Shown piece after piece: positions 1-14,180 of a stretch of 64,000 nucleotides of DNA. Made by a program: the position numbers and the translations under genes. Below the pieces are notes generated by a model. The model was not told the origin of the DNA and ran no database searches. It was given only the letters and a program-made list of their open reading frames with translations. Source of the DNA: Podarcis pityusensis (lineage: Eukaryota); assembly GCA_964106645.2 (NCBI GenBank), contig OZ067043.1; one strand, written 5' to 3'. How positions within the stretch are numbered: the stretch's first letter is position 1; every line of letters begins with the position of its first letter.

Positions 1-455
1 CAATCACTCGTAGCCGAGTAAGATTGTCTTCCATAAACACGGTTTTATCAATGAGTCTAAGTGACCGTGGAGGCCAATTCTGGATCCACACATCCTTCCA
101 CAGTGGGGACATTGGTTTCTGGGCGGGAGCTGATCACGGTGTGGATTTGCCAAGCATGCCTTCCTCCTAGCACATTTTCCCCTTGCGTCCTGAGTTTGAG
201 TGTCTTCAAAACCCATGACACCTTTGGTAAAGGTTGTTCTCCAACTGGAGCACTCGCAGGCCAGTGTTTCCCAATTGTCAGTGTTTATACTACATTTTTT
301 TAGATTTGCCTTGAGACAGTCTATAAACCTCTTTTGTTGACCACCAGCATTACGCTTTCTATTTTTAAGTTCAGAATAGAGTAGTTGCTTTGGAAGACGA
401 TCATCAGGTATCCGCACAACATGACCAGTCCAACGAAGTCCCACTCGCTGGATCA
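1..455 (-). mobile_element. RTE-clade non-LTR retrotransposon, 3' fragment
   Basis: ORF 4..504(-) contains LRWTGHVVRIPDDRLPKQLLYSEL...GGQQKRFIDCLKANLK...WETLA and a C-terminal CPHCGRMCGSRIGLHGH zinc knuckle, typical of the post-RT C-terminus of RTE elements. Confidence 0.85.
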
Positions 456-505
456 TCACCTTGTTGTGATGAGTGGGCTTGCATGTTCCTATGACCATTG
501 TCATA

Positions 506-561
506 GGGGGCGCAAATTACTTGCCTTGCCCCGGGTGCTGACAACCCACGCTACGCCACTG
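506..561 (-). mobile_element. terminal fragment of hAT-like MITE (same family as 891-1058)
   Basis: Reverse complement of about 891-946; ends in ...CCACGCTACGCCACTG. Confidence 0.8.
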
Positions 562-890
562 TAAGGAACATAACATCCAGGACTGTGTACAGACTGTTCT
601 AACTTTCATAATGTCTATCCTTTTCTACATATGCCTCTCATTGGCTCTCTAATCTCATTCCCATTTCATTCAGTCCCTCAAAGCGACTCTTTCAGCTGTT
701 ATTTTTCAATGGACACATAATACTAGTCTTTCACTCTCAACTCTGGCCCATCTTCCATCCAACCTCCCTGCTCTCAGTCATTATTTCAGTCTTCTGTTGC
801 TGTCAGGCATTTATTTGGCTAGTATTTTAGATGCATAAACACTGAATCGCTTCGGTTTTTCCAAGAGGCAGCTGTCCTGTGCAACTCAGG

Positions 891-1058
891 CAGTGGCGTA
901 GCGTGGGTTGTCAGCACCCGGGGCAAGGCAAGTAATTTGCGCCCCCTAACCCTGAGTGAGCCAGGTAGGGGCAGAGAGCTGCGAGTGCGAGCGCGCGCCC
1001 CCCAGATGTTGCGCCCGGTGCAGCCGGCCCCCCCTGCACCCCCCACGCTACGCCACTG
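891..1058. mobile_element. hAT-superfamily MITE
   Basis: TIRs CAGTGGCGTAGCGTGGG/CCCACGCTACGCCACTG; perfect 8-bp TSD AACTCAGG at 883-890 and 1059-1066. Confidence 0.9.
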
Positions 1059-3324
1059 AACTCAGGTACACAATTGCATCAAGAAGCCCATCTGTAGGAG
1101 AGGTGGGGTGGTGACTGCTGCTAGTTCCAGAAGTTAGTCAAATAGATGACAGAGCTTGTAGTGATCCAAGTCATCTTGTGTGAAGTCTAGTGATGGACAT
1201 GATAACTTAGTTCTTTGTATGCTGTTTTCGGTCTGTACTACTGGAGTAACTTAAAAGTTAATATTATTATCTCCTCAGTGTGTCCTGCTGGCTGGCATCC
1301 TGGGAAAGACACTATCAAGCCTGATGTTCAGAAGAGTAGAGAGTACTTCTCCAAGCAGAACTAAATGTGCTGTGTGATTGTTTTTTTGTACAAGGCATCT
1401 ATTCTGTAACCTGTATAAGTAAAAGCAGACCTGTACTTGTCATTCTCCTTATTTTTAATAGTAAAATTATTGTGAGTTAACTGGTTTATAGTTCAGATGC
1501 CATTTATTCTGGATCAATCCAATTTACATTACTAGGACAGCTTTGGAGTAAATGGATTATGAACTGAAACATTGGTCAGTACTTAATAGCTATTGTTGAT
1601 AGTATATGTCCTTTTGATCAGAACCAGGAAAGGGAAATTGTTCCTTGTGCTAGTGTGGATAAAAAGGACCAGTACCATGTATATGATTGGCCCAGGGATA
1701 TAGAACAGGCATGTAGAACAGTCGGTTTTTCTGATGTTTTGTACTGTCATTAAACTGTCATTAAACATTAAATGTCTCTAATTAATTGAGTGATTTCAGT
1801 ATAGCAGGAACATGCAATAGCTCTTCTGAAAGGGCATTCTTTCTGTTAGAAAGCTTGTCTTTGTACTCCTTTGAGGGGGGTGGTATTTCTGAGCTGGGTG
1901 TGAAAAGATAATCCAATACATATCAACGTGTAAAAAACCCTAAGCTTTATGTAACCCCTGCTACATACTTTGTTAACCATGTTGCCAAACCCTTTTAGCC
2001 ATGTAACAGATGCTGCAGCCTTCAGTCTAATAACTCATGACTTACAGACTTTCACTATCCAAAACCTGAACCGCAAGCCTAAAATCATCCATTGATCTTA
2101 GTCCTTGCGTAGTCCTAATTGCCTTCCTATCAGTACTGGCTCTGATATGGTCCCTTCCCTCTCACAACATTTTGTGTACTTACGCAGTTCTGGAATTTCT
2201 CTACATTATTTATTTATTTTCTGTTTCTAAGTGTATGAACTGCCAAGTCATAGGAAAAAAATCATGGCAGTATACAGTACAATAAAACAACATAAAATAC
2301 AGATCAAATTACCAACAAGGAATCAAATAAATCGTTTAAAAATGACTGGAGAAAGCAACTTTTATCGGCGACAAATTATCAAAGTGGTAAGTCTTGAAAC
2401 AATGTTCCAGAGCACCTGTGCTGCTATGCTAAATGTTGGTTCCCGTAGAAACTTAATCTATGTCAGGAGGGCTTCAGAAGAGTGCTGTGATCTGGCCGGT
2501 TTATAAGGGATAAAGTGGTCATTTAGGTAACGTGGTAGATGTTTAGAAGCATTGGGGATGTGATGGTACCGTGAGAGAGCCAATAGTAAAAATGCCAGCG
2601 GTTTATAGTCCTCCAGAGTCATTCTCTGAAAGGTCCTGCAGAAAGGTACAGAACCAGTGAAGTAAAGTGCCACAAATCCCCACCCAGCACTGCTGGTCCA
2701 AGTGGGTACCATGATTGTTGTCAAAAAAGAGCGAGCTGCAGGGTCACACTCTCCTGTGATCAAGGTCATCCATCAGGACCACTAATGCGGACTAGGTCCC
2801 AAAACAACTTGAAGCCAGACTGAGGTAGCTCAGGAGTACATGTTTCACACCTGCACTCAGTAAATTAGAGGATCAACATGCTTCCCAGAAATATGAAAGG
2901 AGTAATATATGATATATAAATTGATAAAATAGCATCTTAAAAGCAAACTTCCTGTACTTGTCCAAGCATTAGAATACAAAACAGCTGCTAAAAGTGCTTG
3001 ATCTTGAGAACCCATTCAGGTTGAACATTCTGCAATTTAGGGGCTATCCTGAGGAAGCGGGAAACAGTACTTGCTGCACTAACTGATAGAACCCACAATG
3101 TGGCACTGCCACCTAACATTAGGAAATACCCCCACAAGGCACTATATTAAAAGGACTTGATTTCCTAAGATTGCAGAGCATCAATTGAGATGGTGATATT
3201 CAAATACCTCCTATAGCTGGGGTCCTCTCTTAAATTGATAGCGTCAAGTGAATTAATGCAGTAAGGATTACTAGCAGACTTCTGGTTAATTCAAAGTACA
3301 TTCTTCTGAGGCAGTCCCTTCACT

Positions 3325-3782
3325 TTATCCCCCTTGCCCCGCTTCCATGGGTGGCTCTAACAGGACTGGCTGAAATGTGCTGGCACACACCCAAGGCTTC
3401 TGTAGCTGTTTTATATTTTTATATTCTTTGGCTCTCCTTTCCTTCTGATTCTCCATGTTTGGTATCCTCACTTGCCATCATACTAGTCTTTGCTGTGTTA
3501 CACACCTGTGAAGGTAATAATAGGCATCTGGTGTATGACACAGACAAACAGAATTAACTGCTAGAAAAATTAGAGGGGAGCTAACAAAGGCAGTTGCTAT
3601 TGCTTGTTGTGTACAAGGAGTAAGATTAATGAGGATTAGGAATCAGAAGAGCTTCATACTTCCGTACCAAGAACAATTGCCACATTGATCCTTGCATGCG
3701 GAGCGCACAACTTTTCAACACCATTATGATATTGGCAGATAACACTGTAGATTTATGGATGTAGAAATCTAGTTTACCACAC
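3325..3782 (-). pseudogene. Decayed tandem duplicate of SELENOP2 (copies of coding exons 3 and 4)
   Basis: 3664-3782 reads CGKLDFYIH...KDQCGNCSWY (functional exon: CSRLAFHIQ...KDYCGNCSWY) with a net +1 frameshift. 3325-3505 shares the acceptor context ATTACCTTCACAG|GTG and AAGCCTTGGGT...CAGCCAGT with exon 9197-9448. Confidence 0.8.
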
Positions 3783-4979
3783 CTCCAAAGCACGTGAAGA
3801 TAAGCAGGATAAGAACTGGTGCCACAAAACCTGGAGATTAATCATTATGCTTTTTAAAATTATATGTTGTAAGCTGTTCTTAAAACTTTTTTTGTAGGTG
3901 TGGGATTTAAAATTGTAGAAAGTTGCCATTAAAGTTGCAGCAACCCATACCTAAAACAAAAATAAAATATTTAGATGTGCTGGAGAAGACTGTTCTTATT
4001 TTTAGGAAATGGCCTGTTGAGTTTTTGAGCTCACAGCTAGTTTTCAAATGTACTTTCATGCAAAAATAGAATCATAATTAGAGTGAAGTAATCATTCTTA
4101 CTGTATTTTATGAAGCTCTACCAATATTTTGTAGAAGCTATACAATATAAAACCTACATATTCACAAGAGGACTTCTGAGTTGTCAGTAGAAATATTGTT
4201 TAAAATGATGATTTGAAATAATTTCTTAAAACTTTTCTGAGCTCCTCATTATAAAATGAATATCATTGTAAACCAGAAGCATACTGCTTTGAATGAATTA
4301 TTTGATAAATGAGTTTTATACTTGGGAATTACATGTGAGGACTCTTACTTATACAACAGATGGTGAAAGATTCAAAGCACAATCCCATGCATTCGTATCC
4401 AGAAGAAAATCCTAGTGATTTCAGTGTGCATGTAAGATTTTACACTGTAATCAGTATGTATAAGACTGCAAACTTAAAGACTAATCAAACATGGCCTATT
4501 TATAGGGAATGACTCTTAAATAAGTTTTAGAAACTCATTAGCATTTTGGATTTTATATTGTATCACCTATGTAAATACTCCTGAATACTATATGAACATA
4601 ACATTCCAATGGAAGCAATTACTCTACATGTGTAAACTTTAAATGTGCCAGACCATTTTCTATAAATGAGTTTCTAAAGCACCGTTAGACATTTTAATTG
4701 AATAATGAAGCCAGTTAACAAAACCCCTCTGAATTGGCTAGATAGGCTTTTGTTTCTTTTTACTTCACTGCCCAACAGGGGAAAGTGGATTGGGCAGGGA
4801 AAGTGTACTTAAGAGGCATTAAAGCATATTTACCCCACAGCTGCCTCCTCCGTTGCTGATTAAAGCCTAATGCTGTCCCACTTTTGAGGCTTCCAACAGA
4901 AGTACTACATCTCCTAAAGGCAGCCCATAGTGTGGATTCCATGGAGAAATAGACATGGACACAGCCTCTCCTTCCCTCC

Positions 4980-4982
<3 letters not shown>

Positions 4983-5063
<81 letters not shown>
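4983..5063. repeat. compound (CT)n(CA)n microsatellite
   Basis: Directly visible. Confidence 0.97.
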
Positions 5064-5066
<3 letters not shown>

Positions 5067-5719
5067 CATTCTGCTTTTCATTCTTTGGCTGATCCCTCAG
5101 ATGAACAGGGTTAAAGGGCCTCTAAAGCAAATGGCAATGTTAAGTAGAAGATAAAAAAGCTGTACAGATGTTTACACAACCTCATGGTCCTTGGTGCTAG
5201 GCAAGTAAGAGACAAGCTTATGGGTGCAAATGCAGGGGGAATTGTAAACAGAGCATACACAAAGGGAGGGAGGAGGACTGTTCCTCACAGACTGTAGCCT
5301 AGCAAATTTTATCACTCCTTTCTCTGTGTGGTATACTACCCACCCTGTAGACTTGTGTAGGTTTGATTTTTAAGGCAAATAATCAGAAGGGTAAGAGGAT
5401 CCGAACCCTCCTTCCACTCAGTACTTAATTTTCCATAGTTCCCTGCCAAAATGCTTCTCATCCAGTTAAAGTCACTTCCAATATTGGAGCTCATCCATGG
5501 AGAAAAATTATGGGAGGGGAAGATGTTAACATCAATAATATTGTTACTGCTTCCCTCTGAAGAGCTTTAACAATAAAAATCTGTGGGAAAGACTTTGCTG
5601 TTCTACCAATTCTACCCTAAATGCTAAGGCTCCTTTAACTGAGCATCTATTTGATTTGATTCTGTAATCATGCTGTCAAACAAAACCCTAATGCGATTTA
5701 GTACCAAGGCAAAATACAT

Positions 5720-5862
5720 GTAATAATAAAAATAGTTTTATTATTTGCACCCCACCCATCTGACTGGGTTGCCCCAGCCACTCTGGACTGCTTCCAACAT
5801 ATATAAAAACATAATTAAACATTACAAAAGTTCCCTGTGCAGGGCGGCCTTCAGATGTCTTC
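5720..5862 (-). mobile_element. LINE (L2-like) 3' end fragment
   Basis: Reverse-strand homolog of about 24850-24985 (ATCTGAAGGC.GCCCTG...CCAGAG.GGCTGGGG.AACCCAG.CAGATGGG) with a TAA-rich tail; family assignment from recognition only. Confidence 0.6.
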
Positions 5863-6376
5863 TTTCTCCATTTGCAGTGGGATTGCATCCTCCACCATGC
5901 CTGACAACATCTTGCCTCCACTTTTATCCCCCTAGCATCTACCACCTGAGGTGGCTGCTTCACTCTGCCCAGTGGTAGGGCCAGCCTTGTCCATCAAAAA
6001 GAGACTACATCTGCAATGCTATACCCACATACTTGGCAGTAAGTGCCATAGAACTCAAATGAGGCTTTATTCTGAGTAGGCATAAACAGGCAAACTATAA
6101 GATATTTTCTGGCTGCTGCAAACAGAGAGGCCAGTTTAAAGAGGATCTTTAGCAAATATTTGACCTGCATGTTAGATGAGATTAGCATTAAACATGATAA
6201 TAATAGTCTTGCTCCAGTTTTGCTGTGAACCTGTGGACTCTGCTGCAAATGTAAGCAAACAGGACATGAGGCAAAGGAGTTTAGTTTGGATAATGGGAGC
6301 TGTGGGCTGGGGCAGAGGGCATCAGGAAAGCTGGATCAGAGCCCAAGGCCAGCATTAGGTAGGAATGTTGTTGTCC

Positions 6377-6458
6377 TAAGCAAAACATCATTTTGCCCAT
6401 CTTTTTAGCACTTTTAGTTTTTTAAGCAAAACATAATTTTGCCCATCTTTTTAGCACT
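6377..6458. repeat. short tandem duplication (about 35-bp core)
   Basis: TAAGCAAAACAT(C/A)ATTTT...GCCCATCTTTTTAGCACT occurs twice. Confidence 0.85.
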
Positions 6459-8518
6459 GGTACTACTGAAGATTTTTTTCTTTGGTAATTAATAATGGTA
6501 ATGCTGTACATAGAAATAAAGGGAAGAGATTGTAAATACAATTGGAATGTTAAAAAAACCAAAACAAGCCAGCCATATAATTACTTTGTTTGGTACAAAA
6601 CTATCAGCAAGAAAATAGTCTCTTAACAATTAAATTATGACCTAGCTGCTGTAGATTGGGCCTCTGCAGATTTCTGGGGGGCAGGGATGGTTTCAGCTAG
6701 GTATGTACATAAGTTGGAAATGAACTAAAGGAACATAAAAAGGGAACGGAACAGCATGTGGGAAGGACAGCTAAATCTTTGCATGTCAGTTGGGCAAGTA
6801 ATCAAATATTACACCAGATCATAGCAGCTACCATATGGCTGCACGGTGGGGTGGGAATATTGTTTTTGTTTGTTACTACGTTATGTATTGTGGAGAGCAA
6901 GACTGCTAAGAACATTAAACTAGTTGTTAAGCAACTAAGGCTGCAAGTTGAATCACAGTTGCGAGCAGTTTATTTAGCGTCCATTGTGCTGGTTATGCCC
7001 TGGGTGAAGGCGATTAATTATATGACATATTACCAAAAGCTATAAATTATGTCATAGCTCTAATACATGTAAGTTAAGAGTAGCCAGCATGTACAGATAT
7101 CAGGAAAGTTTTGATATACACAAGGGGATAAATAAATCTGCAGTAAGTATGCTGTTTACACCAAAGGTGGCTTGTTAACTATAAGCACCTCACTGACAGC
7201 CTAATGCCCTTTTATTGCTTGCAGAATTTCAAAGGCTGCCTTCTTCCACAAGAACCTCCTGAACTACTAATATTATACCAGGAGGCCCTTCTTTAGATCT
7301 CCCCACTTTCAGGGACTCTGATTGGGTCTTTCCAGCTATACTGCCCTGTCTTTCCTAGAAAAGCTTGCCTGACACCAGCAGCAAGCCTTATGAATATCTG
7401 GGGCCAGGTGAAGAACTGTTTTATTTCATTTATTTCATTGAATTCTGATCATGCTTCTTGCTTGCCTGGGTGAAGAATAGAGAGGAATGTGTGAACATGA
7501 AGAAACTAGCCTACTGGTATGAAAGGTAAAATTAACCATTGTTGCTTCATTCACTTTTGCCTCTGGCCCTGTGCACCACTGGCAGGCAGCCCTCAGAAGG
7601 CTACCCAGAAGCAAATGTGGCCCTTGGGCTGAAATAAGTTCTTCACTCCAGTCTACAGCATGTGTGAGTGTAATCAGCAGGGTTATAATTGTGAGCTACC
7701 TATTACAGATGTTATACCTATGGCAGGTCCTGTAAATTGAAGATTGGTCCCTTTAGCCACCAGCTGAGATGTAATAAAAAGGAATTGAGGCTTTCAAAGA
7801 AATGCCATAAACCTATGGGCAGCTGCCACCATTTGCAGTCTAGTCTAGCTGGCTTTACTAACTAGGGTTACTTTGGAATAAACAGATTATAGGTGGATAC
7901 GTATCAGCATTAACAATACAATAAAGACAGATTACACCCTCCCGTAAATATTTGTAGCAGTAGCTTCCTAAAACTGGGATGTGGAGGACTTGTACAGTGT
8001 GCACCAATTCACTGACCTTCAACAAATAACAGGAACCTGGACTATTCTCAATAAGGACTGCTCAGTATGCCAAAAATGCAGATAAACTATGGGACATCTC
8101 TTAAATGTTGAAGGTGAATACGTGTTCTACAATGCTGTGTACTGTCTGAAATAAATGACACCATTTGTACATTAAGGTATTGTGAGCAAAGACTTCAAAC
8201 ATTTCAGAGAATTTATTTCCAACATTCTTTCCCAGAAACAGTTATACTACTTTTAATCAGCAAGCAGTGCATCCCTTTTCATTAATTTTCCTGATAAATG
8301 GCATTTTCTTCCCTTGTTCAGCTCTCATAGCCCTGACAAACTCAACTCTCACCTCAGACTTCTCTGTCTTTCATACTTCTATCAACATACCTGTAAACTT
8401 GGCTAATTCTGTCTCACCACTTCCATTCCTACAAACCGCAAATGTTCTTTACTTGTTGTATTACTTCCAGCAATACAACAAATGTCTTTTTACAAGCTAG
8501 TAATTTGTGTGCATGGAC

Positions 8519-8524
8519 TTTAAT
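8519..8524 (-). terminator. candidate poly(A) signal (ATTAAA) of SELENOP2
   Basis: ATTAAA on the minus strand about 120 nt 3' of the SECIS; alternative AATAAA at 8212-8217. Confidence 0.4.
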
Positions 8525-8634
8525 GTACAAAATCTTGAGCCCTAGGCTCAAAGTCAGCCTTCTCTGCCACAGTCAGTCACCCTCCTGCTAATACCAGTTC
8601 TGATCCCCATCCTTCCATCTCCAAGGACATGCTT

Positions 8635-8695
8635 TTATGTACGGTGTCAGCATGTGGTGACAGAAAGTTTACATCACATGCTTCATTGAGTGCAG
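8635..8695 (-). promoter_or_regulatory. SECIS element in the SELENOP2 3' UTR
   Basis: Minus strand reads caAUGA-AGCAUGUGAUGU-AAA-CUUUCUGU-CACCACAUGC-UGAC: AUGA/UGAC non-Watson-Crick quartet, helix GCAUGUG/CACAUGC, unpaired AAA 12 nt after AUGA. Confidence 0.9.
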
Positions 8696-9196
8696 AAAAG
8701 CAGGAAATGCAAAAATGGGGTCAAAATTGGCTTCTCAAGAAGCTGATTACCATAGCAGCTCTGTGTTCCTGAGGAAAACAAGATGGCTTCCTTAGGCAGT
8801 CCTCACCACAGAAATGGGGTGTATCTAAAAATCCATCTGAGCCCAAGAGGAACACCACCTTAAGGCTTGGTGGAACAAAACTGGTGGATATGAGGTTAAC
8901 TGGGAGACAGATTCAAAATGAGGATAGAAGTCTCATTGTGGACAAGCAGTTAAACTTTCCAATCACATATATGACACAACAAAAGTTTTTGTTGTGTCCT
9001 CTGCTATCTGTTGAGAGACCTTGAATGATTAGGGAGTGGAACATTTACTTCCCTTCCCCTGCTGAAAACTGAGCCATCATATTTCTTCCTTCTGATGCAT
9101 GTAAGTTTGTCCCCTGGCTCTTCTTAAAAGCTTGCTTAGTGCTAAGTATGCTTATGGCTAACAGTTGGGTGTTGCATACATTGAAGTTTAAATGTT

Positions 9197-12100
9197 TTAT
9201 GGGGATTCCCTTGTTTGATGCTTCTGTGAGTGATTCTGAGAGTGGAGAACTGGCTGGTGTGTACTGCTCAAACCCAAGGCTTTATGGTTGCCGACTCCTC
9301 CATGATGTGAATAGTGATGGGCTGTGTGCTTGGTGTTAGGTGCTTCTTGGCTTGGCTCATCGTGATGGTACCTGGGTTCTTCCAGGTGCTTCTCTTTGTG
9401 TCCAGATGCCTCAGTTGTCGTCACATTAGTACTTGCTGTCTTATTCACCTGTGAAGGTAATGAAAGATTCTAGTATACAGATGGGCTTAGGGTGAAGACA
9501 GAAACACATTTTTAAAAGTGAAGATGGATGTATATATCTGAAGTGATCTGCATTCAGCCCTTTTTGACAAAATATGTAAACTTCCAAAATCAACTGAGCT
9601 CAGAACAACTGCTACTTTCTGTTTTCAGGAGAAATTGGCTGTGAAGAATGGTGATTGCCTGGCAGTCACTTAAAAAGTGGTTTTAAAGAATGTGTAAAAT
9701 AGAAGTTTAAATGAGTAAACATGCTGGATGTTTAGGCGTAGAAATGGTTTTTAAAAGCCCAAAGTTTGAGAGGCAAAAAGCTGCACAGGAGTTTAAGCCA
9801 AGTATATATCTCTCTCAAAAGAGCAGGGAGGGAAGAAGGTTTGATTTCTCCAGATCAGAAAAACCTGCACCGACTCCTGGAAGGAGATCTGTTTGACTTC
9901 ACTCTCGGTATGGTCGAAATGGCTTAAAAGGTATTTATAATATTTTGCTGCATTGGCTATCGGGGCAGCAAAAAACTAAAATAGGTAATACATCAGGGCC
10001 CTCCCGCAATCCCACCTTGAGGAATGAACTTTCAGATCACTGATGGGGCAGGAAGTGACACCACAGGACAAGACAGCAGTTATTATTTCTTCTGTCCAAG
10101 GAACAATATGCTCCCATTCATTGGGAACAGGGAACACTTCAACCTGACAAATTAAGGGTGTTTTTTCAATAACTGAGGGCAGACAATGGTTACTGGGTGA
10201 GGCTCAAGCAGTACATGATAGCAGCAGACCCGGGTCTTGCCCCACCATGTGCAAAACAGGAAGGTGGGGTTGACTTTAGAGAAAAGAGGTGCCTGGGTGA
10301 GGGGAACCAAACCTTTCCTGCACTTGATGCCACACAGTTTCTGTTCCAAAGTGTCTTTCTCCAAGTCAATCTCACTTTTAGTATCTGAACTCAACTGGGG
10401 AGAAAAGCACTTGGGGGAGGGCAAGCACTTGGGGGAGTGTGAGAAGCTGAAAGTGGGGGGGGGGGTTAGCATGTCCTCCCACCTGGGTTCTCCTGGACCC
10501 CTCCACGCTACACTATCTGTGACTGCGGCAGACCTGGTGTCTCCATCTGCAATTTGCTTCTGAGGTTTTTATTTCAAGATGGTTTACTTCCTGCCAAGAT
10601 GAAAGATGCTTTGTGGTATCTCAACATCCTTTCTCCTTGCTTGCTGTAGTGGCCCAATATAATAAAACCCTCCCTTCCACCTTCTCCTTCCACATCCCTT
10701 CTGTAAGACCGATCTGATCAGAAACCTAGAATTCCCAGGCAGAAGTTCAGGATGGGCAAATGAGGAAATGTCTGGCTTAAATAAAATAGTTGAAAAGGAA
10801 GTTGATGAGGGGATTCAAGTCCCTACCTCCTGGCTGCTGTTAGAGGGGTACCAGGAACAATTGCCGCAGTAGTCTTTGCTGTGTGTGTACCGCACGGCTG
10901 CTTCAACATAGGGCAAGTGCAGAAAACTGTATGGCAGCTGGATGTGGAAAGCCAGCCTGCTGCACCTGCAAAGCCCGAGAGCCATGAAACAAATGGACAT
11001 AAAGTTAGTGTCAGGAGAGCCTGTAATCCACTAATTTACACTGGAAATGAATCTAACCTGGCCTGAAGAATCTGGTTTTCCTCACCAACAGTTGTGAGAC
11101 ATGATGGTAAAGAGAAACACTTACATCATGGTATGTCCTTTCTTTCCAGATGTGTCCTCAAACAGACTTTTTGATAATGTATTCAGGAATCCTGAATTCC
11201 ATATGTCTTACTTTCCTTCCTTCCTTCTGCCCAGGCCTGCAGACCCCCATTGGCCTCCCATCAGCAGCTGCCTACGGAGCACCCTCTTCTGCCCCCGCTA
11301 GTGCTGCTGATGGGATCCCTGCTGGTGGCAGCAGGGGCTTTCAGCAGCCAAGGAAGGAGCTGGACTGAGCCGCCCTGCAGATGGTCCCACTGCCAGAACT
11401 GGGCTTCTTCCAGGCTCAATTGCTGCACCAGCTCCAAGCTGGCTCAGTGATCTGCCTTCCCTCCCTTCTGCCCCGGCTGCTATGCACAGCAGTGGCCCTG
11501 ACTCTCCAAAAACCCTATCAGTCTGGGTGGGTGGGGAGTTAGCATTGCTCCCTTAAGCACTGACCTGTCATAGATCAGGAAGTCATCCTTGTCCCCATCT
11601 AGAATTTGCCAGACGTCAGGCTCCAGAATCTGCTGCTGGTAAACAGGAACTCCCTCTGGGGCATGCCGTTTGAGCTCCCAGTACATGGCCCTGGAGAAAG
11701 GAGTCTTCTCATTCACAATCATGAAGCTGACATTGGTCACTCCTTCAAGTGACAGCTTCCTCTGCAAGCTGCCAAGGCTGGTGGGTAGGAAGAACAAGTA
11801 ACGTTTAGGAAATGAGGTGCACAGATATAGGTTCCAGCCCTTGTCCTCTGCACATACCATGTGGGATATGAGCCTGCACTGCTGGACGGAGGCCCCTTCA
11901 TTTATCAGTTCACTGGACTTGCCATTACAGCGGTCCCTGCTACATAGATCCAGCAATAGGTTAAATGATACATATTATGCTTGAGCTGTAATTCACCAGG
12001 GAAATTGCATCCACCATCTATAAGCGTGTTATATCTGGCCTGCTGCAGCCCAGGCCTCAATTTTTGATTGTTGAACTGGAGCTTATAGACAATCAGTTCA

Positions 12101-12622
12101 GTTCTGTGTTTCCTGGTAGAAAGCCTAGGGGCAAAGATGTGACCTTAAGAGTTGTGATATTGCCACTGAACACCAGATACAGGGTTCCAACACATATCTG
12201 ACTTTCTAGTCACATCCAGACCATCTTTTTAAAGCATGTGACTTTCCCCAAAGCATTATGGGAACTGTGATTTACCCCCTGACAGAGCTACAGTTCCCAG
12301 CACTCTTAAACTACAGTTCCCATGACTCTTTGGGGAAAGCCATGTGCGTCAAATGTATGGTGTGGCTGCAACCTAACAGCTCCTGACTCAGGCAATCTTC
12401 TCTATGAACTCACCTGGCGGCCTGCTTGAGACAGAACTGTCAGCTGGCTTTCAACAGTGCCACCACTGTCACTTGGCCCTCCATCCCAGCCATGGGGGCC
12501 ACCCCATTGATCTTCCAGAGTGGTGCAGGTTGGCATATTCTGGTCCTGTTCTCAGCCACGTCTGCCAGCGTAGCAGCAATTGCCAGGAGCAGCAGCAAGG
12601 TGGCTAGGGCTGAATAGCCCAT
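9197..12622 (-). CDS. SELENOP2: Selenoprotein P2 (SelPb), 270 aa, one Sec
   Basis: Coding exons 12622-12414, 11777-11565, 10965-10827, 9448-9197 (813 nt, GT-AG, phases 2/2/0). Signal peptide MGYSALATLLLLLAIAATLA; SelP_N motifs GQVTVVALLKAS-U-QFC, DGDKDDFLIYDRC, CGNCS; His-rich tail. In-frame TGA at 12442-12440 plus a SECIS. Acceptor at 12643-12644 implies an upstream non-coding exon. Confidence 0.93.
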
Positions 12623-12691
12623 CCTGGCCACCTCCCTTCAGCCTAAAGTAGAAGAGAGCAGCTTAAGACCATAAGAACTTCCCTCAGCAGG

Positions 12692-12786
12692 GAAGTCTCG
12701 GGGGGGGGGAAGGGGGAAAATAATGAATATGATATGTTTTGATAATTTGTTATGTTGAAATTGTTAATAAAAACAAAACAAAAAAA
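12692..12786 (+). mobile_element. 5'-truncated L1-type retroposon 3' end
   Basis: G-tract, AATAAA and A-rich tail flanked by a perfect 19-bp TSD AAGAACTTCCCTCAGCAGG (12673-12691 and 12787-12805). Confidence 0.8.
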
Positions 12787-13789
12787 AAGAACTTCCCTCA
12801 GCAGGCCAGATGCAGCCTCTAAGTCTCAGAAGGCTTTCTTCTTAGTAAACATAGATAGGATTGTCCTACATGGGTGCCCTAGTGCCCTGTATTTGAAAGT
12901 GACAGTAATGGATGCTTAAAGACACACTCACATATCAGCTGCCCAGGATTTCAGCTACAGCAAGGGTTGTTGCTATCCTGTGGCCCTCTGGATATTGTTG
13001 CAGTACAACTCCCAGCATGGTCATTAAGAACCTATGAAGAGACCTGCTGGATCAGACCAAAGGCTCATCTAGTCCAGCATCCTGTTCTCACAGTGGCCAT
13101 CCAGATGCCTAGTGCCACAGCACTCCCTCTATTTGTGGTTCCCATTGACTGGTATGCAGAGGTGTCTCGGACAGTAGAGGTATCCATCATATCTAGTGGT
13201 TATGAATAGCTCTGCCCTCCATGAATTTGTCTAATCCTCCTGTCTTGCCAAAGGCAAGGTGGTTCTTTTAAAATGAGATTCAGAAGCAATACAAAATACA
13301 CAAGTGAGCGAGAAGTTTAAAGATTTTATTCTAAAACAGCAAGCAAGGTATACATATACCAAGCAAGCACTTCAATCTGCCACTTGGAAGCCCCCAAGAA
13401 GCGGCGAAGCGACTCCCCCAGGTACCCTCAGTTTGCATGACCCTGTGGCCGATCAGTCCGTGCATGAGCTTCAAACAAACTCTGCCCAAACCGTCCGATA
13501 TTATAGACAACCTGTGTGGCTTCCAAGACTGGCTATGTGCAGATCATCCAATAGCCACCCCCTCCCAAGGCCTCAGTTTCTCAAAACAATGTCCAGCATC
13601 AAAGAAGGCACCCAGAATTATCCTCCACAACTGATGAAGGCAGCTGTGTGTGAGGCTTCACCTCCTCCCAAAGTTCTCAGGACATTAGAGACTGTTCTCA
13701 CAGCATCAAAAAACTTAACAAGAGCAAGGGAGGGGGAAGGAACAGAGGCAGGAAGGGTAACCGTGTCAGATCACTAACTCCTCAATACA

Positions 13790-14180
13790 TTTTGTTTTCA
13801 GATGCATTTCTCATACACCTCCAAAATAGTGGCTATCTCCACATCCTGTGAGAGCAAGTACTTATATAGTACTTCTTTTTGTCTGCCCTGAATTTTCCAG
13901 TATTCAGCTTCATTGGATGGCCTAATATTCTGGAAGACAGAGAGCAACTTCTCTCCATCTACGTTCTCCATGCCATGCATAATTGTAGACATCACGATCA
14001 TGTCCCTACCTTATACACCTTTTTTTCTAATCTGGAAATCCCTAAATGCTGTAACCTTTCCTCATAAGATGGTTGTACCAGCCCTTTGATCATTTTAGTT
14101 GCCCTCGCCTTTTCTGAAACTTTTCCAACTCTACAGAATATATTTTTAAGGGAGGTGACCTGAATGGTACACAGTATGCC
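13790..14180 (-). mobile_element. degraded CR1-like LINE fragment
   Basis: ORF remnant IMHGMENVDGEKLLSV... and CR1-type 3' sequence; recognition only. Confidence 0.55.

Follow-up and report, generated by a model that had tools for sequence, protein, structure and literature searches.

To our knowledge, vertebrate selenoprotein catalogues contain one SelPb per non-placental genome, the whole-genome duplicates of salmonids excepted. SELENOP2, or SelPb, is a selenoprotein P paralog with one Sec residue (Mariotti et al., 2012, PMC3316567; Pacitti et al., 2018, PMC6301783), and the SelPa and SelPb loci are found on separate chromosomes (PMC6301783). For the Podarcis pityusensis DNA analyzed here, a stretch of 64,000 nucleotides referred to as the window, a decayed second SELENOP2 copy in tandem downstream of the functional gene had been predicted from the sequence alone and placed at 2830–3790. 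The prediction was accompanied by the remark that no description of such a squamate SelPb duplicate was known; our literature searches for SELENOP2 in lizards and for squamate selenoproteomes likewise returned no paper, and the copy is not mentioned in the library searched. Our analysis indicates that the minus strand of 3341–3797 very probably carries a non-processed pseudogene fragment of a SELENOP2 duplicate that arose in tandem at the DNA level, of which exons 3 and 4 are left in decayed form with a shrunken intron 3 between them.

The working SELENOP2 gene, which is the parent or the sister of this relic, occupies 9198–12622 on the minus strand and comprises 270 codons. Its coding exons (12622–12414, 11777–11565, 10965–10827, and 9448–9198) are bordered by AG/GT throughout, and intron 3 has a length of 1378 nt. 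There is one in-frame TGA, which is part of a UxxC motif in a ...SUQFC... context. The exons were queried one by one, and no joined gene model was used in database searches; exons 1, 2, and 3, each searched alone, were recognized by the Pfam model SelP_N with E-values of 5e-9, 2e-24, and 1e-14, respectively. A SECIS-like hairpin (AUGA / AAA loop / GA; fold z −3.0) is located in the 3' UTR at 8640–8686 on the minus strand, and the RNA cover of the gene, determined with reads from a congener, reaches down to approximately 8250.

On the other side of the relic, the last coding exon of a convergent 2-Cys peroxiredoxin was detected at 1279–1364 on the plus strand (1-cysPrx_C, E 2e-7), and its C-terminus is one that we take to be that of PRDX1. 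A peroxiredoxin neighbor was also called in the orthologous SELENOP2 loci of other squamates. Furthermore, the SelPb locus is known to be syntenic with human chromosome 1 (PMC6301783), with which the PRDX1 identity of 1279–1364 agrees. A conserved ATTAAA cluster is present on the PRDX1 side at 1749–1772. The closest sequence used for comparison, P. lilfordi OX395131.1, is 98.15% identical to the window across 12.5 kb.

Self-comparisons were carried out with 8200–13000 against 1–8100, and with 2800–3900 against the whole window. By blastn, two collinear matches with an E-value of 1e-8 each were obtained. The first pairs 3664–3797 (minus strand) with 10848–10980, corresponding to exon 3 and 15 nt of its acceptor flank (66% identity over 139 columns), and the second pairs 3439–3523 (minus strand) with 9380–9466, corresponding to 18 nt of acceptor flank and the first part of exon 4 (72% over 87 columns). 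Both keep the strand and the order of the gene and line up precisely with the exon boundaries. A further match between 10295–10425 and 5389–5522 (62%, E 6e-6) involves intron sequence that is not collinear with the gene and was treated as an old repeat.

DNA profiles constructed without any relic sequence gave the same picture. The exon 3 profile, built from the functional exon 3 of nine species, matched 3795–3664 (E 3.6e-10), while the exon 4 profile matched 3523–3455 (E 9e-11) and 3408–3341 (E 1.4e-4). As the latter match extends to 3341, the exon 4 copy continues nearly as far as the site of the stop codon, although parts within it are deleted. At the protein level, CGNCSWY in pseudo-exon 3 was recovered by tblastn at 3693–3658 (E 1e-4), and a SelPb HMM run on the six-frame translation matched 3714–3646 (E 0.005), which represents the exon 3 part of the SelP_N homology only. 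A Pfam search with the 40-aa open frame of the relic gave no match. The original prediction, which had assigned 3782–3664 to exon 3 with CGNCSWY retained, and 3505–3325 to exon 4 plus flanking intron, in the strand and order of the functional gene, is thus confirmed in these points, and its coordinates and quoted strings were correct. The homology covers 3341–3797, and no SELENOP2 homology was found in 2830–3325.

Four parts can be distinguished in the relic, all on the minus strand. Pseudo-exon 3 (3664–3782) reads CGKL...CGNCSWY and contains a TAA and a TGA stop in the homologous frame as well as one additional A. It is preceded by a remnant of intron 2 beside the acceptor (3783–3797), which resembles the functional acceptor flank and retains the AG. 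Pseudo-intron 3 (3506–3663) has shrunk to approximately 158 nt, the last 18 nt of which match the functional acceptor tract. Pseudo-exon 4 (3341–3505) comprises most of the coding part of exon 4, interrupted by internal deletions. The intronic similarity is short, about 15–18 nt per splice acceptor. Nevertheless, an intron remnant between the pseudo-exons and an acceptor-like tract before each of them show that the relic is not a retrocopy, and the DNA-level tandem duplication that had been proposed on the basis of intronic similarity holds.

Homologs of exons 1 and 2 outside the working gene were not detected by tblastn or by the SelPb HMM in six frames across the whole window. Lacking exon 1, the relic has neither a Sec codon nor a UxxC motif. 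A counterpart of the SECIS element downstream of the relic was not found by blastn. An Rfam search of 1–14000 at E-values up to 1 also gave no match, a weak negative for the relic since the SECIS of the working gene was missed as well. Of the predicted second copy, exons 3 and 4 alone were recovered; since exon 1, exon 2, and the SECIS have left no trace, it is perhaps a partial duplicate only. The conserved element at 6042–6420 was considered as a promoter or exon 1 of the relic and rejected, as its profile misses the SELENOP2 5' region in every locus.

The lesions in the relic were compared with those in P. lilfordi, in which the relic is also present, and in another Podarcis, congener D. 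In the window, the first Cys codon and the CGNC Cys codon are spaced 97 nt apart, compared to 96 nt in the working gene and in the P. lilfordi relic. This results from one extra A at 3752–3754, which is absent in P. lilfordi and congener D. The predicted frameshift of 97 versus 96 nt is consequently real in the window, but private to P. pityusensis and not a shared lesion. In P. lilfordi, the homologous frame contains a TAA and a TGA stop. Common to the Podarcis relics are two in-frame stops and the truncated 3' end of pseudo-exon 3, from which 17–20 nt are missing, so that the frame is shifted into pseudo-exon 4. In addition, pseudo-exon 4 of the window lacks one segment still present in P. 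lilfordi, and the congener D relic exhibits further indels at 3719 and 3752. Between the window and P. lilfordi, the relic (473 nt) shows 1.06% mismatches and 2 indels, the entire 12.4 kb 0.87% mismatches and 12 indels, and functional exons 1–3 (561 nt) no mismatches and no indels. The relic drifts at the neutral rate, without purifying selection.

To determine where the relic occurs, orthologous loci of Crotalus adamanteus, P. lilfordi, Lerista edwardsae, Gekko kuhli, Phrynocephalus forsythii, Phrynosoma platyrhinos, Chelydra serpentina, and Alligator mississippiensis were examined. In the skink Lerista, the relic-free profile of functional exon 3 matched L004:17240–17324 (E 7.8e-7). This fragment is shorter, represents exon 3 only, and lies on the SELENOP2 strand just past a transposon-like segment; it includes CSWY and an NSNQE-like exon 3 end, the latter being lost in the Podarcis relic. 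The order of SELENOP2, conserved non-coding element, relic, and PRDX1 is the same in Podarcis and Lerista. No relic was found in Crotalus, for which the whole interval was covered, in Phrynocephalus or Phrynosoma, in the Gekko locus, the flank of which may be too short, or within 10 kb in turtle and alligator. An intact second SELENOP2 was found in none of these loci. Likewise, among 240 SelP-family proteins none was nearer to the relic than ordinary SelPb, and no intact second copy was identified.

A tree was calculated from exon 3 and exon 4 DNA, with three relic rows and with turtle and alligator as comparison. The relics were placed inside squamate SelPb with respect to turtle and alligator with a support of 100/100. 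An origin from SELENOP1 (SelPa) was ruled out by this nesting, by the separate chromosomes of the two genes (PMC6301783), and by the CSWY motif. The three relics formed one clade, the support of which (77/86) is not strong and which may be caused by long-branch attraction. A topology in which the functional squamate genes form a clade without the relics was not rejected (p 0.27). The character states were examined as well. The relic reads CSWY like the functional squamate genes, compared to CSLY or CSFY in turtles and birds, and it carries the squamate state at 5 of 6 informative substitutions of the squamate stem. In exon 4, the relic retains states of gecko, skink, and snake that are altered in the Podarcis gene.

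Taken together, the duplication appears to be old, and we slightly favor a single event in early squamates, no later than the split of skinks and lacertids, followed by decay. SELENOP2 was very probably duplicated in tandem at the DNA level, with the copy between the working gene and the convergent PRDX1, after the squamate-type SELENOP2 had arisen and probably before lacertids and skinks separated; the duplicate then decayed through in-frame stops, truncation of the exon 3 end, indels, and neutral drift. A single old event requires loss or complete decay in the lineages of Crotalus, Phrynocephalus, and Phrynosoma. The relic is still recognizable because only one branch evolved neutrally, its counterpart being the slowly evolving functional exons. 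The great age that had been predicted is supported by the tree, the ancestral states in exon 4, and the skink fragment. The argument originally given for it, that CG in place of CS points to an old duplication, is weak, as the functional SELENOP2 of the gecko Sphaerodactylus also reads CGKL.

The main competing explanation is a recent duplication that took place only within Podarcis or within lacertids and decayed fast; the Lerista fragment would then have arisen independently or would match by chance. The distribution is compatible with it: the relic is known from two Podarcis genomes and one skink fragment and from none of the snake and iguanian loci. The derived bases common to the Podarcis and Lerista relics (3 of 43 testable columns) are not significant, and the two relics can barely be aligned directly. 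A recent origin is difficult to reconcile with the divergence of the relic from the functional exons (approximately 30–34%) and with ancestral states in the relic that were lost from the Podarcis gene. Forcing the Podarcis relic to group with the Podarcis gene cost 7.95 lnL (p-AU 0.039), and judged by these sequences a Podarcis-only origin appears marginally rejected. A chance match in Lerista is opposed by its E-value, obtained with a relic-free profile, and by its location, which agrees with that of the Podarcis relic in strand and interval. We therefore consider a recent duplication rather unlikely. When the Lerista fragment was forced to group with the skink genes, an independent origin was not rejected (p-AU 0.063); two separate duplication events in the Podarcis and Lerista lineages are possible, and the orthology of the two fragments is putative.

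The old duplication allows for a more far-reaching scenario, in which HPDL and PRDX1 of early squamates were separated by two SELENOP2 genes in tandem. The second gene would have lived long enough to leave relics in lacertids and skinks, and might even be intact in unsampled scincoids or lacertoids, in dibamids, or in the tuatara. We regard this as a distinctly long shot; if true, an undescribed selenoprotein P paralog would join the reptile selenoproteome.

Transcription over the relic was assessed with one bulk and one single-cell RNA run, both from a congener and of unspecified tissue. Stranded bulk RNA of congener D gave 0 sense-strand reads across 3250–4249 and no splice joint there. Antisense RNA was observed at approximately 12x from 3250 to about 4050, with all first mates on the minus strand. 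In the same run, the first mates of the SELENOP2 3' UTR (8250–9249) were on the plus strand only; calibrated with this known minus-strand gene, the RNA over the relic is plus-strand. Its cover halves in the 3850–4049 bin, just past an AATAAA at 3961–3966, so that a plus-strand transcript antisense to the relic can be delimited to 3250–3990, where 3990 is about 20 nt past the AATAAA and 3250 is the start of mapping rather than a 5' end. This RNA could be a long 3' UTR isoform of PRDX1 that continues past the ATTAAA cluster at 1749–1772, or a separate RNA. Given that neither sense reads nor joints were seen, no SelP-like RNA is expressed from the relic in the examined runs.

These data also bear on the possibility that both segments are live alternative 3' exons of SELENOP2 and give rise to a shorter isoform. 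In favor of it, the AG acceptors are kept in both segments, and the frame dictated by exon 2 is free of stops through pseudo-exon 3 in the window. This open frame is, however, not the homologous one. It results from the 1-nt insertion that is absent from P. lilfordi and congener D, the copies of which contain TAA/TGA. Given in addition the lack of sense reads and joints and the neutral divergence and indels between congeners, alternative exons are highly improbable.

The original prediction had named a dispersed repeat, or the lack of a collinear alignment with exons 3 and 4, as outcomes that would speak against it; both were tested, and the segments proved to be collinear and single-copy. In 100 shuffles the best score was 29.7 bits, compared to 52.5 bits observed. 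The region 2800–3900 gave only the two SELENOP2 matches in the whole 64 kb window and no further copy. The DNA depth of congener D over 3250–4049 was approximately 10x, equal to the single-copy flanks, and exceeded 300,000 at a true repeat (5650–6049); the relic is thus single-copy, which excludes a dispersed repeat. Despite the short segments and an identity of merely 66–72%, a chance similarity or a repeat shared with the gene is hardly credible in view of these values and of two strong same-strand matches that line up precisely with the exon boundaries.

The pseudogene fragment thus makes no selenoprotein: exon 1 with the Sec codon and UxxC, exon 2, and the SECIS are all missing, stops are present, the sequence evolves neutrally, and no sense RNA was detected. 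As a dead piece of a gene it is of an ordinary kind, and its modest evolutionary interest is due to its age and to the possibility that early squamates had a second SelPb that was lost. For the selenoprotein catalogues, this dead, partial tandem copy of SelPb in lizards is a small addition, and it suggests a local SelPb duplication in early squamates after which the extra copy was lost. For annotators and selenoprotein-prediction pipelines it serves as a warning, since the CGNCSWY match that Podarcis shows close to PRDX1 belongs to a pseudo-exon. It also illustrates how long neutral squamate DNA stays recognizable against a constrained paralog.

Compared to known systems, the relic resembles non-processed pseudogenes beside their parent gene in its tandem position on the same strand, in the preserved exon/intron order and splice flanks, in being disabled by stops, frameshifts, and deletions, and in its neutral evolution and missing sense transcript. 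It differs from typical representatives in that it is detectable only as a 3' half (exons 3–4), is unusually old yet recognizable, and is embedded antisense in a transcript from the side of the neighboring gene. With SELENOP2/SelPb it shares the homology to SelP_N in the part encoded by exon 3, the squamate-type CGNCSWY, and the SelPb locus beside PRDX1, whereas it is devoid of the Sec codon, UxxC, exon 2, and SECIS, has a broken frame, and is no functional member of the family. Like SelPb1 and SelPb2 of salmonids, it is an extra SelPb copy within a vertebrate lineage (PMC6301783). The salmonid genes, both intact and expressed, originate from a whole-genome duplication and are located on separate chromosomes (PMC6301783), whereas the lizard copy is local, tandem, and dead.

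Cross-species alignment revealed a conserved non-coding element at 6042-6420 (core 6092-6349), located between SELENOP2, the working selenoprotein gene, and the relic, its decayed partial duplicate. Counterparts at the equivalent place align in Lerista edwardsae, Gekko kuhli (75%), Phrynocephalus forsythii, and Phrynosoma platyrhinos; in Crotalus adamanteus the alignment was weak. Podarcis lilfordi differed from the window at 0.39% of positions across the element. The invariant core includes TCATGTTT and TCAAATATTTGC, both of which look like FOX/HNF-type sites. No RNA cover was found over the element and a search of Rfam returned no match. The element is regarded as a candidate enhancer, probably of liver type and belonging to either SELENOP2 or its convergent neighbor PRDX1.

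Plus-strand RNA was observed at 3250-3990, with a cover of approximately 12x in one stranded run of a congener for which the examined region starts at 3250. The cover stops past an AATAAA at 3961, which lies more than 1.5 kb past the conserved PRDX1 poly(A) signals (1749-1772). This RNA either is unannotated or represents an isoform of PRDX1 with a long 3' UTR.

A further match links the working gene to the intergenic DNA upstream of the relic: positions 10295-10425 in intron 3 of SELENOP2 match 5389-5522 on the same strand (62% over 138 nt, E 6e-6), and the match breaks the exon order. The two segments may be copies of an old repeat or a rearranged part of the duplicated segment.

The repeat at 5650-6049 is present in very high copy: its DNA word depth exceeded 300,000 in two congeners, and RNA reads of both strands contain it in abundance. 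Positions 4980-5065 hold a (CT)n(CA)n microsatellite. Close to the window start, a minus-strand ORF of 166 aa (4-504) has a retrotransposon-like tail that includes RIPDDRLPKQLLYSEL, and is probably a LINE or reverse-transcriptase-related fragment.

The SELENOP2 promoter carries an insertion of approximately 90 nt on the minus strand (within 12700-12810), approximately 80-190 nt upstream of the ATG. The insertion runs from T-rich at one end to C-rich at the other and is bordered on both sides by a direct repeat, ctgctgagggaagttct, of approximately 17 nt that resembles a target-site duplication. The whole looks like a recent insertion of a small transposon.

With the 70-aa peptide encoded by SELENOP2 exon 2 (11777-11565), 11 separate stretches of P0002, a 1105-aa protein of the representative library, were matched (E 8e-27). 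By this likeness, P0002 would be a protein of many tandem SelP_N-like repeats.
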